A program made the translations under genes and the position numbers. This document shows, in pieces, positions 2,845 through 7,676 of a DNA stretch of 13,769 nucleotides. How positions within the stretch are numbered: the stretch's first letter is position 1; each line of letters begins with the position of its first letter. The stretch is taken from sequence record NC_028256.1. The stretch is one strand, 5' to 3'. Under the pieces are notes generated by a model, which was not told where the DNA came from, did not search any database, and saw nothing but the letters and a program-made list of their open reading frames with translations.

Positions 2845-3168
2845 TTAGAGGCCTGAGGCTACAGCGCTGAATATGATGAAGGCGAACGCTAGGCTTACCG
2901 CCAAGTACCCGTATATTATTGCTAGGGCTATGGCAGCCCTTCTCAGGCGTCTCCCTGGGGGGGCTATGGCTACCCACAGGGCGGCCGCGGCCATCGCTAC
3001 GGCTGCCGCCGCCTGGCCCGTCGCCCCGCTCCCAGTCGCGAGCGCTATTGGGAGCCCGAGCAGGGTTAGGGGTGCTCTCACGGCATCCCCGCCTAGAGCC
3101 ATGCCCAGCAGCGTGAGCGGCATGTATAGTGCTGTGAGGAAGAGGAGGGCTGGGACGGCCCTTTCCAA
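2845..3168 (-). CDS. Multi-pass membrane protein (107 aa)
   Basis: Three to four Ala/Leu-rich hydrophobic segments. TTG start preceded by GGTGG; TTAATTAA TATA-like box at 3204-3211. Confidence 0.7.
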   Translation of the reverse strand: MERAVPALLFLTALYMPLTLLGMALGGDAVRAPLTLLGLPIALATGSGATGQAAAAVAMAAAALWVAIAPPGRRLRRAAIALAIIYGYLAVSLAFAFIIFSAVASGL

Positions 3169-5257: not shown

Positions 5258-5347
5258 GGCGCATCGGTGTTTAAAATATCAAGGATAATGTCTAGTCTAT
5301 CACTAATTCATGGCCGCTCTAGGCTACTCTAAACAGCTTCCATCGCC

Positions 5348-6353
5348 TTAAATCCGTCTGGCCAGAGCTACAGCTCTCGCCAGGGCGATTGCAGCCGCCA
5401 GGGCCCCTCCAGCCGCTGCAGCCGCCTCGGGCAGACCCCAGTACTGACCCCTTGCCTTAGCCTCTGCAATGTACTGCTTGGTAGAGTTGTACAGGTAGTA
5501 AGGGTCCTTTATGGCTGGGTCGTTAGCTGGCTCTATGAAAGTGTTCTCATGGTACTCGTTCCAGCTAGTTATGGCTATCAATCTCACTCTGTCAAGGTTG
5601 CGGAGCACCCATTCCCACTGCCTCTCGTACCAGCCCTGGGATAGGTCGTAGTCTATAGAGAGGCCAGGGCTCCTGAAGTGGTCATCCCTATAACGTGGGG
5701 TGAGGACAACATAGCCGTCCCTCCTCACCCTCAGCTCCCCGCTCAACGCATTGTCGTAGTCTGGCCAGTAGTCCCAATCCTGGTAGCCTGCACTGTCAAT
5801 GTCATTACCTACTATCCTGATTGCGTAGCCAGGGAAGTCGGGCCTCGGGTCGTATGCCAAGCCTATAGGGTTGAACGCCAGCACCAGGGGCTTGCCGTCC
5901 AGCCTGAGATATGCTCCTGGGTAGCGGTCGATGAAATTTTGCTTTATATAAGCTAGGGTCTGCTCCCAGAACGCCCTGTCATACCTCGAGGGGTCGTTGC
6001 CGAGATAGGGCTCAACGAATATGGCGGCCTTGAGTCCGTAGAGCTGCGCCCTCCAGAACACCCTCCTAGCCGCCTCGTCCTCGAAGCCCCCTGGCCCCCA
6101 CCACGATATGAAGAGGCAGTCTATGCCAGCCTCCCGCATCCTCTGGAGCTGCCAGTCGATAACCCTAACGTCCCTGCTGTCGTAGAGGCCGATAACAGGC
6201 ACTGCAAGAACAGTGCTGTCCCAGTGCCTCCCATCACCGCTGTACCATGGGTAGAAGTAGACGCAGACTATAGGCTGGCTAGAGGAGTATACCGTGATGG
6301 GGGCTGTAGATAGTGCTAGCAGGAAAAAAGAGTAGTGCTGCTTCTCTTCTCAC
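5348..6353 (-). CDS. GH99/GH71-like glycoside hydrolase (endo-alpha-mannosidase family) with signal peptide and C-terminal membrane anchor; frameshifted at 6324-6329
   Basis: GH99-type motifs: VYFYPWY (in frame upstream of the track's 6202 start), GLYDSRD, AGIDCLFISWWG, FVEPY and ITSWNEYHENTFIEP (ExxE catalytic pair). The SD-led GTG at 6353 is in a different frame; removing one T from the T6 run yields a 334-aa protein starting MRREAALLFFLLALSTAPITVYS. Confidence 0.85.
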
Positions 6354-6355
6354 GG

Positions 6356-7024
6356 CTACCTCCCCAGCTTGCCTACAATACCCACCATCCTGTCGAGAAT
6401 CTTTATGACGACACCGAAAACAGCAACAACAACCAGCAGCGGCATCACGGCGGCTACAGCCTCTGTTATAGCGCTGGGGTCGTACATGGCGCTATAATCT
6501 GGCTCCGTCGACAATGTTATACTGCCAGCGGTGAAAGCCTGGGTGGTGCCGTCAGGCGTGTGGGCCCATATGTCGGCTAGGCTAGGCGCATTTATGTTGG
6601 CTAGCTCGTACAGCAGGTTTCCAGCGTCGTCGTAGATCTGAAGCTTGTCCTGGCGGTACTTTATTGTAAGCCCTGCTAGCTGGCTCCAGTCCCCCAGAAC
6701 TACGTCAGTCGTGACGCCTAGCGCAGGGGCCTGTAGCACTATGCTCCCGCTGGTCTTGAAGAATAGAATCAGCACCTCATTAGCGGCTGAGTCCCTGAAG
6801 CTTAGTGCCAGGTTGTCGGTTGCTGGGGCGTTTGTAGTGGAGTCTATGTTAACCTGCAGCCCGCTCCAGGCGACGGTTATCAGTGCTGGAGGGTCTACTG
6901 GGAAGCTGTATGTCTGGTTGACTACTGTAGCGTCTATGGTTACGCTGGCCGCTGCCAGGGCTGGCGCTGCTGGCGCCACCAGCAGTGCTATAGCTATTGC
7001 AAAAGCGACTAGTGGGAGCTTCAT
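6356..7024 (-). CDS. Putative minor virion protein (222 aa): signal peptide, beta-rich ectodomain, C-terminal TM helix and basic tail
   Basis: MKLPLVAFAIAIALLVAPAAPALAA leader, NQT sequon, C-terminal AVAAVMPLLVVVAVFGVVIKILDRMVGIVGKLGR. Confidence 0.8.
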   Translation of the reverse strand: MKLPLVAFAIAIALLVAPAAPALAAASVTIDATVVNQTYSFPVDPPALITVAWSGLQVNIDSTTNAPATDNLALSFRDSAANEVLILFFKTSGSIVLQAPALGVTTDVVLGDWSQLAGLTIKYRQDKLQIYDDAGNLLYELANINAPSLADIWAHTPDGTTQAFTAGSITLSTEPDYSAMYDPSAITEAVAAVMPLLVVVAVFGVVIKILDRMVGIVGKLGR

Positions 7025-7045
7025 GGTAACCCCCTCTAGCGCGGT

Positions 7046-7303
7046 TTATGTGAAGCTCCTGAACACCCTCTCTATCACGTCGAAGATCTTCATTAGGAAT
7101 ATCAGGGGTATCAGCAGGGCGAAGAGGCTCATTATTATCGGTAGCATCTGGTTTATTATGCTTGTCATGTCTGTAGTCGTGGTCTGGCCGAGCACTGCAA
7201 GGGCTAGGGCTACGCCCGCCAGGGCCCTTGCCTTGAAGCCTGTGGCCGCGTGTTTGATGCTCTCTCTAAGGCCTGCCAGGGCCCTCCTTAGCCTACCTAT
7301 CAA
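7046..7303 (-). CDS. Candidate major capsid protein (85 aa, hydrophobic alpha-helical)
   Basis: First gene of the leftward structural operon. Basic N-terminus, hydrophobic leader, then amphipathic helix, hydrophobic helix and basic tail (DMTSIINQMLPIIMSLFALLIPLIFLMKIFDVIERVFRSF). SD-like GAGGCGGT before TTG. The MCP role is inference. Confidence 0.7.
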   Translation of the reverse strand: MIGRLRRALAGLRESIKHAATGFKARALAGVALALAVLGQTTTTDMTSIINQMLPIIMSLFALLIPLIFLMKIFDVIERVFRSFT

Positions 7304-7391
7304 GGCTACCGCCTCTATGTAGACCTGTTATGACTTCGAAATTGTTTAGAGCTCCTCTTTTACAATAGATTAAGGTGGGTGCCCCCGCTAC

Positions 7392-7676
7392 ATGGCGGCT
7401 CTCAGTCCTCCAAAGAGGGTGACCTTGGCGTTCGTTCACAGGGAGACTGGCAGTGTGCATAAGAAGAGGCAGTTCGAGTTCCGCAACGAGCATAGGGCCC
7501 TGATAAAGATGTGGGCCTGGGTGTTGAGCTACATGGAGGAGTACCCTCCGAAGTCCTACCGCCTAGTAGCATACATACATGAGGGCCCCTACCCCGAGTT
7601 CATAGCCAGAAAGCTCAGGGAGTGGAATATACGGGTTATAGAGCCCAGCGGAAAGGGTATAGAGGTGTACAAGTAG
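7392..7676 (+). CDS. Hypothetical cytoplasmic protein (94 aa)
   Basis: ATG 7392 divergent from the capsid operon, AT-rich upstream (TTTTACAA 7358-7365), typical codon usage. Confidence 0.75.
   Translation: MAALSPPKRVTLAFVHRETGSVHKKRQFEFRNEHRALIKMWAWVLSYMEEYPPKSYRLVAYIHEGPYPEFIARKLREWNIRVIEPSGKGIEVYK

Follow-up and report, generated by a model that had tools for sequence, protein, structure and literature searches.

Introduction

Inoviruses encode, in addition to the small coat protein pVIII, the protein pIII which has receptor-binding domains and a C-terminal membrane anchor joining the coat; until assembly, both proteins reside in the membrane. To our knowledge, the pIII anchor is no sequence paralogue of pVIII. 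Here we describe two adjacent genes, orf12-85 and orf11-222, of APOV1, an enveloped ovoid double-stranded DNA (dsDNA) virus of an archaeon in which, unlike in the inoviruses, the membrane anchor of the larger protein is demonstrably paralogous to the small protein. The window that was analysed (NC_028256.1, 13,769 nt; record HE580237) is the whole APOV1 genome. The virus belongs to the Guttaviridae, one of the archaea-specific virus families.

Several features of the inovirus arrangement recur at the APOV1 locus. In the Pf1 procoat pVIII a signal peptide of 36 aa precedes a mature coat of 46 aa, similar to the basic leader and 46-aa single-span peptide predicted for ORF12 and, in Pf1, gene 8 is followed by orf437, encoding a signal-peptide protein, as ORF11 adjoins ORF12. 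In fuselloviruses, VP1 and VP3 are adjacent and paralogous small hydrophobic structural proteins, and VP1 is cut from a longer precursor. They carry two hydrophobic helices whereas mature ORF12 carries one, and we know of no ectodomain fusion to either VP1 or VP3.

Galectin and ConA-like domains often bind sugars, and tail and structural proteins of phages commonly contain them. The ectodomain of ORF11 superimposes on solved structures of this kind (the galectins AAL/ACG of Agrocybe and CGL2/CGL3 of Coprinopsis, GH16, and GH32 C-domains), but at only 11–15% identity and with no Pfam lectin match for ORF11. No galectin is known to us with this kind of membrane module.

Pleolipoviruses, which also have enveloped virions, carry a gene for VP3, a small and better conserved membrane protein, followed by the gene for the spike protein VP4. 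The latter is more variable, is N-terminally processed, has a C-terminal transmembrane (TM) anchor and is presumed to bind the receptor, and no module common to VP3 and VP4 was reported (PMC3384331). By gene order and predicted topology APOV1 likewise has a small membrane-protein gene directly followed by one for a C-terminally anchored surface protein; however, VP3 has several TM helices and the pleolipovirus hosts are halophilic euryarchaea, and we consider the parallel an analogy only.

[quoted passage not shown] In the accessible literature, APOV1 and the fuselloviruses are also assigned to one gene-sharing module. In the genome record orf11-222 (6356–7024, minus strand) and orf12-85 (7046–7303, minus strand, TTG start) are both annotated as hypothetical proteins, no function has been assigned to either in the readable literature, and we found no description there of a module common to them. 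A sequence-only reading of this DNA had placed both genes exactly as annotated, correctly quoting a 41-aa string from each, and had proposed that ORF11-222 is a capsid-protein paralogue with a fused beta domain that co-assembles into the shell, constituting a natural display system.

Homology of the Small Protein and the ORF11 Anchor

Word-seeded protein searches with ORF11 or ORF12 retrieved nothing beyond the query proteins. Exhaustive searching by phmmer, with ORF11 as query, yielded six relatives with 27–44% identity, each on a contig with a gene of 74–90 aa directly upstream. A profile search extended the family of small proteins to 26 members, and six further loci found with the small-protein profile again carried the pair. 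The relative loci, denoted below by L numbers, derive from metagenomes and contigs of archaeal metagenome-assembled genomes.

These relatives carry the evidence for homology. BLASTP with composition adjustment aligned the two members of cognate small and fused pairs with E values of 9e-10 (L009), 2e-8 (L004), 4e-7 (L010) and 9e-4 (L002). When the small-protein mature regions were compared with the ORF11-family C-termini using hhalign, the probability was 97.8% (E 8.7e-13, score 57.1, 43 columns), against a mean score of 9.5 for 200 column-shuffled alignments (standard deviation 2.2, maximum 16.6), 14.3 for the reversed alignment, and 8–17 for natural controls consisting of the signal-peptide regions of the same proteins, the Pf1 and Pf3 coat proteins and SSV1 VP1/VP3. 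All six-frame open reading frames (ORFs) of at least 40 aa from four genomes were scanned with a hidden Markov model (HMM) derived from the small proteins alone. Below the small proteins, the model matched the ORF11-family C-termini of L012 (8.5e-13), L002 (2.6e-6) and L004 (0.047) and no other annotated membrane protein; nor did this model reveal a third module copy among the six-frame ORFs of APOV1, L002, L004 and L012. Given the cognate BLASTP alignments, the hhalign score relative to its controls and the specificity of the HMM, we regard true homology of ORF12 and the C-terminal module of ORF11 as practically certain. The paralogy that the sequence-only reading had proposed thus holds over the C-terminal module, and the profile-profile comparison of the two C-termini that it had suggested as a check gave a similarity well beyond that of random TM helices.

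Within APOV1 by itself the homology is statistically invisible. BLASTP of ORF12 against ORF11 gave no alignment at E ≤ 100. The best Smith-Waterman alignment of the two 41-aa strings scored 36 and set the second proline of ORF12 against P195 of ORF11, in a register differing from the one-gap register proposed earlier, which scored 14 with eight identities; both reached p ~0.02 against shuffles preserving the head, core and tail architecture, and other APOV1 membrane segments scored 12–34 against the two strings. The HMM built from small-protein relatives only gave E 0.42 for APOV1 ORF11, which is at noise level, with an unannotated ORF just above it at E 0.24. An HMM constructed from all 13 modules scored the APOV1 ORF11 module at E 1.5e-11, a value that is not independent because the module itself was included.

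The module occupies residues 182–222 of ORF11 (6359–6481, minus strand; stop codon 6356–6358) and is a diverged copy of the mature part of ORF12, with a TM helix four residues shorter. Of the landmarks on which the original comparison was built, the proline (ORF12 P55, ORF11 P195) and the K-I-x-D motif (ORF12 K72–D75, ORF11 K208–D211) occupy homologous columns, whereas the D-xxx-I motif is offset by three residues and is coincidental. The corrected register requires a 4-residue gap in the ORF11 helix, and two indels are needed in place of the single gap proposed. The short TM helix is common to the APOV1 ORF11 module and the fused module of L022, which are sisters with 97/98 support.

Pfam, PHROGs and NCBIfam contain no family for ORF11 or ORF12, and a sequence search of the PDB with the module profile produced chance matches only (E > 1), while an ESM Atlas feature search with ORF12 gave scores of at most 0.85 that we treat as leads only. 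One relative gave sub-threshold matches to the "major coat protein" families PF19199 and phrog_1646. Since SSV1 VP1 gathers spurious Pfam matches near E 1e-3, these matches lie within the noise and were rejected as coat evidence. An archaeosortase-type sorting signal (PGF-CTERM and relatives) was also considered and rejected, as no NCBIfam/TIGRFAM CTERM model matched ORF11, ORF12 or seven relatives at E ≤ 1; the module, moreover, has a 14-residue tail and also occurs as a protein by itself.

Matched Evolution of the Two Modules

Fused modules resemble the small protein of their own locus more than permutation would allow (p 0.0056 for six pairs and p 4e-5 for 11 pairs), with the cognate being the best match in five of the 11 pairs and the second best in three. 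A tree of 22 modules unites the small with the fused modules of one group of viruses (clade B), with support of 98/97, and forcing all small proteins into a single clade costs 10.3 log-likelihood units (p 0.047 in the approximately unbiased (AU) test). Clade-wise covariation is seen in both paralogues, with respect to a basic residue located 16 or 17 positions after the proline and to the presence or absence of a second proline. At the DNA level, the small and fused genes of L018 share 36 consecutive identical nucleotides and those of L021 are similar, the identical runs in the two loci being 22–36 nt long, a pattern that indicates gene conversion. In the relatives, sequence comparison shows the anchor being kept matched to its cognate small protein, by gene conversion or by selection.

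Predicted Properties of ORF12-85

The first 39 residues of ORF12-85 (7187–7303, minus strand) form a leader with a basic n-region and a 13-residue h-region, and cleavage is predicted after V-L-G. The predicted mature peptide, residues 40–85 (7049–7186, minus strand; stop codon 7046–7048), is 46 aa and 5.36 kDa and serves as the reference copy of the module. It comprises a Thr-rich head, a proline-containing TM helix and an amphipathic C-tail, K-I-F-D-V-I-E-R-V-F-R-S-F-T, with a net charge of about +1. A single hydrophobic segment (46–81) was found in the mature part and AlphaFold2 (AF2) predicts a helix over residues 43–84, while the model with the leader retained is a two-helix hairpin.

Among the 26 family members the leader is 24–47 aa, variable in sequence and always carries 4–9 Lys/Arg residues, with an uncharged stretch of 9–15 residues directly before the cleavage site in 21. 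At the homologous site, position -3 is V, T, A, S or G and position -1 is G or A in all 26 members (A-H-A in some), the residue that follows is Q, E, N or A, and the part after the site is 44–50 aa throughout. Mean column identity among relatives in this mature part is 66%. Given the variable leader, the conserved small-x-small site and the fixed mature length, ORF12 looks like a pre-protein that is cut to a 46-aa single-span peptide starting at Q40.

Predicted Properties of ORF11-222

ORF11-222 begins with a putative signal peptide (residues 1–24, ending A-L-A; 6953–7024, minus strand) which lies within a hydropathy segment of residues 1–32; AF2 places a helix at 3–15, followed by a low-confidence linker, and signal-peptide cleavage is predicted here. 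The ectodomain (residues 27–176; 6497–6946, minus strand) is modelled as a galectin/ConA-like beta-sandwich of 12 strands and a long C-terminal helix follows (residues 183–221). The predicted local distance difference test score (pLDDT) is 84.6 overall and 93–97 over the ectodomain. Fungal galectins are the best Foldseek matches (E 2e-7), followed by GH16 glucanases, GH32 C-domains and animal galectins, and alignment to 3wg3_A with VIA-align gave Z 12.5 with 150 of 163 residues aligned and a root mean square deviation of 3.7 Å. The fused beta domain seen in the sequence-only reading is thereby borne out by the model. ESM Atlas produced ConA-like, LamG and CBM matches for ORF11, and the ectodomain is further matched by LamG/ConA-like domains from tail and structural proteins of phages. 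The residues P100, G111, W113 and D126 are invariant within the family. Given the fold and the neighbouring gene for a GH99-like glycosidase, the ectodomain is a probable glycan-binding domain, perhaps acting as a receptor-binding lectin.

Among the ESM Atlas neighbours of ORF11 are clusters of hypothetical proteins of Nitrososphaerota, of 222–224 aa, that match its entire predicted layout, from the signal peptide through the beta-sandwich to the C-terminal helix (TM-score 0.61–0.63).

Sequence Comparison with Known Coat Proteins

The sequence-only reading had linked the small protein to the coat proteins of fuselloviruses and to inoviral pVIII, and at the sequence level neither link was found. 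PF06281 (VP1_VP3) was not matched by ORF12 or five relatives at cut-offs of E ≤ 1 to 5, and neither was His1_capsid, while SSV1 VP1 and VP3, as positive controls, matched PF06281 at 2.4e-19 and 1.8e-38. With hhalign, the VP1/VP3 alignments scored 13–17.4 against the module, which is noise, as is the score of 14 for the Pf1 coat. The inovirus coat profiles PF05371, PF05356 and PF19199 gave no match above cut-off for six family members; the small protein of L004 reached 20.8 bits with PF19199, for which the cut-off is 24.6, and the other five, including APOV1, gave nothing. With regard to general coat properties, the cleavable leader and the single-span mature peptide of 44–50 aa, as predicted from sequence, occur in all 26 members, and the Lys-rich C-terminus that neutralises ssDNA in the filamentous inovirus virions was not found in the tail of ORF12, with its net charge of about +1.

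The mature Pf1 coat (L014:929-1066) has G-V-I-D-T-S at its start, and in most family members T-[IV]-D-T-S is found no more than five residues past the predicted cleavage site. The resemblance between these starts, in proteins both of about 46 aa, is at the hhalign noise level and we note it as a curiosity.

Gene Order among the Relatives

Gene-order statements hold as far as each contig reaches. In the six phmmer relatives the fused gene is followed by a GH99-like gene and then by a gene of about 675 aa, and the order small gene, fused gene, GH99-like gene and a gene of about 530–680 aa was found in 11 of 12 distinct relative loci. The exception is the decayed provirus L019 in which the fused gene is truncated and the module lost. 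Over most of its length the APOV1 genome is colinear with the 12-kb contig of L004. Some of the 26 members lie on archaeal contigs of 100–630 kb, one of them named Desulfurococcaceae, and these copies are therefore taken to be proviruses. Searches of a viral contig collection with ORF9-678 or with a module alignment gave no related locus, and a phage collection yielded only APOV1.

A second type of fused protein, of 223–230 aa, is encoded at L018:2619-3293, L020:4280-4951 and L021:4280-4972. Its module is up to 60% identical to that of the cognate small protein, and its ectodomain has no detectable similarity to that of ORF11 (hhalign probability 1.8%), whereas the L022 ectodomain is homologous to that of ORF11 (97.3%). 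Downstream of this second fused type lie a gene of 321–325 aa without a GH99 match and then one of 532–546 aa.

Two fused genes are damaged. That of L012 (L012:2542-3180) is interrupted in frame by a stop after codon 134, downstream of which the module is intact, and in that of L019 (L019:4298-4825, a provirus from a Desulfurococcaceae bin) a change of frame has removed the C-terminal module. They look like decaying copies or assembly errors.

Expression Context and the GH99-Like Neighbour

A TCTAAA..TTCGAA-like motif at 7329–7351 (minus strand), about 25–50 nt before the ORF12 start, is a candidate promoter element; similar motifs occur at the same distance in L002 and L004, and TATA-like TATATATA boxes are found there in L009 and L012. 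Shine-Dalgarno-like sequences precede both ORF12 and ORF11, that of ORF11 (GAGGGGGT) lying in the 21-nt spacer between the genes (7025–7045, minus strand) which lacks a T-run. A T6 run at 6324–6329 (minus strand), located 27 nt past the ORF11 stop, is a candidate archaeal terminator, and a T5–T6 run follows the fused gene in six of seven loci examined. It may act as a terminator or as an attenuator between the gene pair and the glycosidase gene.

Contigs assembled from RNA libraries of three samples (X3–X5) of one study cover 6237–7260, 6220–7262 and 6274–7213, spanning ORF12 and ORF11. In these samples no RNA-library contig covers the GH99-like ORF10 (5262–6131), and ORF9 is covered; this repeated hole over ORF10 renders uniform carry-over of DNA unlikely. 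A fourth RNA run, from another study, gave the whole stretch as one near-identical contig and was uninformative. Since the spacer is only 21 nt and lacks a T-run, and single contigs span both genes in three samples, ORF12 and ORF11 are probably co-transcribed; weighing against this, carry-over of DNA is possible, and such contigs are no proof of a single transcript or of its strand, level or ends.

The GH99-like enzyme has a split N-terminus (6203–6355, minus strand). A GTG start and about 10 codons extend in one frame to the T6 run, and the coding sequence resumes in the +1 frame and leads into the annotated ORF10-284; this continuation corresponds by homology to the signal-anchor and S-S-x-P-h-V-C-V-Y region found in relatives of 334–351 aa. 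The RNA-library contigs from the three samples show no indel at the T6 run, and the frame break is therefore not an error of the reference only.

A Proposed Envelope Role and Its Alternatives

We propose that orf12-85 and orf11-222 constitute a conserved adjacent gene pair heading the envelope or structural gene block of APOV1-like viruses. The variable basic leader of ORF12 would be removed to leave a 46-aa membrane peptide with a Thr-rich outer head and an amphipathic inner tail, while in ORF11 the signal peptide and beta-sandwich are followed by a copy of the ORF12 peptide, serving as the membrane anchor. Both proteins would insert with the N-terminus out and the C-terminus in into the host membrane, which would then become the envelope of a budding, non-lytic virus. 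Because it is anchored by a copy of this small subunit, ORF11 could take a subunit position among the ORF12 peptides and show its probable glycan-binding domain on the virion surface.

The concerted evolution of the modules suggests functional coupling, most likely envelope co-assembly, which lends indirect support from the relatives to the co-assembly proposed in the sequence-only reading (p 4e-5, clade support of 98/97, and the 36-nt run in L018), and we lean slightly towards ORF12 and ORF11 co-assembling in the virion envelope. The accompanying idea of a display system gains in part from the occurrence of the module on an ectodomain unlike that of ORF11 (L018, L020, L021), as would fit a display platform. 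A more specific version, where mature ORF12 would be the main envelope or coat unit, comparable to a pVIII-like procoat, and ORF11 a lectin display fusion with swappable ectodomains and a match kept by gene conversion, is put forward tentatively and is rather unlikely. A predicted complex of three copies of ORF12 41–85 with ORF11 170–222 scored 0.02, for a mark of 0.34, and counts neither way.

Several considerations weigh against the envelope role. The virion location of both proteins is a prediction, and both the cleavage of the ORF12 leader, predicted by sequence rules only, and glycan binding by ORF11, deduced from the fold alone, are likewise provisional. The APOV1 modules are the most diverged pair (12% identity, rank 11 of 11), implying that matching is not strictly required, the AU test is marginal on an alignment of 44 columns, and concerted evolution may arise as a side effect where homologous DNA stretches lie next to each other. 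Moreover, the published 10.5 kDa major capsid protein fits poorly by mass with ORF12, for which 9.3 kDa is predicted for the precursor and 5.36 kDa for the mature form, and ORF2-89, ORF8-107, ORF20-100, ORF6-94 and ORF13-94 (10.2–11.3 kDa) are all nearer. We consider it possible, yet on balance doubtful, that ORF12 is that protein.

One alternative is that the modules are homologous and function in the host membrane, for instance where particles are assembled or leave the cell, in the exclusion of superinfecting viruses, or with ORF12 as a small partner or chaperone of the ORF11 lectin, and with the major capsid protein encoded elsewhere, for example by ORF13-94. The published mass accords better with ORF13-94 (11.3 kDa), ORF20-100, ORF8-107 and ORF2-89 than with mature ORF12, and ORF13-94 is kept at the same place in relatives; nevertheless, mature ORF12 is more conserved than the ORF11-type protein (66% versus 44% mean column identity), it heads a block of secreted and membrane proteins and, given that APOV1 is enveloped, abundant viral membrane proteins are expected in its particles. 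We judge a host-membrane role unlikely, if worth retaining. A purely passive origin, in which the anchor was copied as a convenient TM segment and gene conversion maintained the similarity with no need for contact, would account for the identical runs of 22–36 nt in L018 and L021, which reflect conversion at the DNA level, and for an APOV1 pair at 12% identity with neither gene lost. Yet the copied unit extends beyond the TM helix to include the outer head and the inner amphipathic tail, the clade-specific basic residue and second proline co-vary in both paralogues, and the module is carried by two different types of ectodomain, all of which render this origin improbable. Finally, a generic likeness, of the kind that any two hydrophobic helices show if their heads are polar and their ends basic, would be in line with the BLASTP and small-protein HMM results (E 0.42) within APOV1 alone and with the tendency of small hydrophobic proteins, such as SSV1 VP1, to gather spurious matches; it is refuted by the relatives, through their BLASTP (9e-10) and hhalign scores (57 versus 17), the HMM specificity and the near-identical modules of L018 and L021, and we give it hardly any credence.

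Two neighbouring genes bear on the identity of the major virion protein. ORF13-94 (7392–7676, plus strand), divergent from ORF12, encodes a basic, soluble protein of 11.3 kDa, and its position is kept in every relative locus that reaches upstream of the small gene, with 70% identity in L002. Its mass accords better than that of ORF12 with the published 10.5 kDa major virion protein, for which it constitutes an alternative candidate. ORF8-107 (2845–3168, minus strand) encodes a hydrophobic protein of 10.7 kDa with three helices and has no counterpart in L002 and L004, where an ORF7-like gene comes immediately after the homologue of the 678-aa gene; it is either specific to APOV1 or no real gene.

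Significance

At least 26 APOV1-like elements have now been defined, from hot-spring and vent metagenomes and Desulfurococcaceae-type bins, and they enable covariation and structure work. For the envelope of these viruses the analysis provides a candidate subunit, a peptide of 46 aa, predicted to be processed, that might be missed on ordinary gels, and a candidate receptor-binding lectin, ORF11, that would be held through a copy of this subunit kept matched by concerted evolution. If the proposed envelope role is correct, the pair would represent a naturally occurring equivalent of phage display in an enveloped, hyperthermophilic virus, and a clear case of a minor virion protein arising by domain fusion onto a paralogue of the coat subunit.

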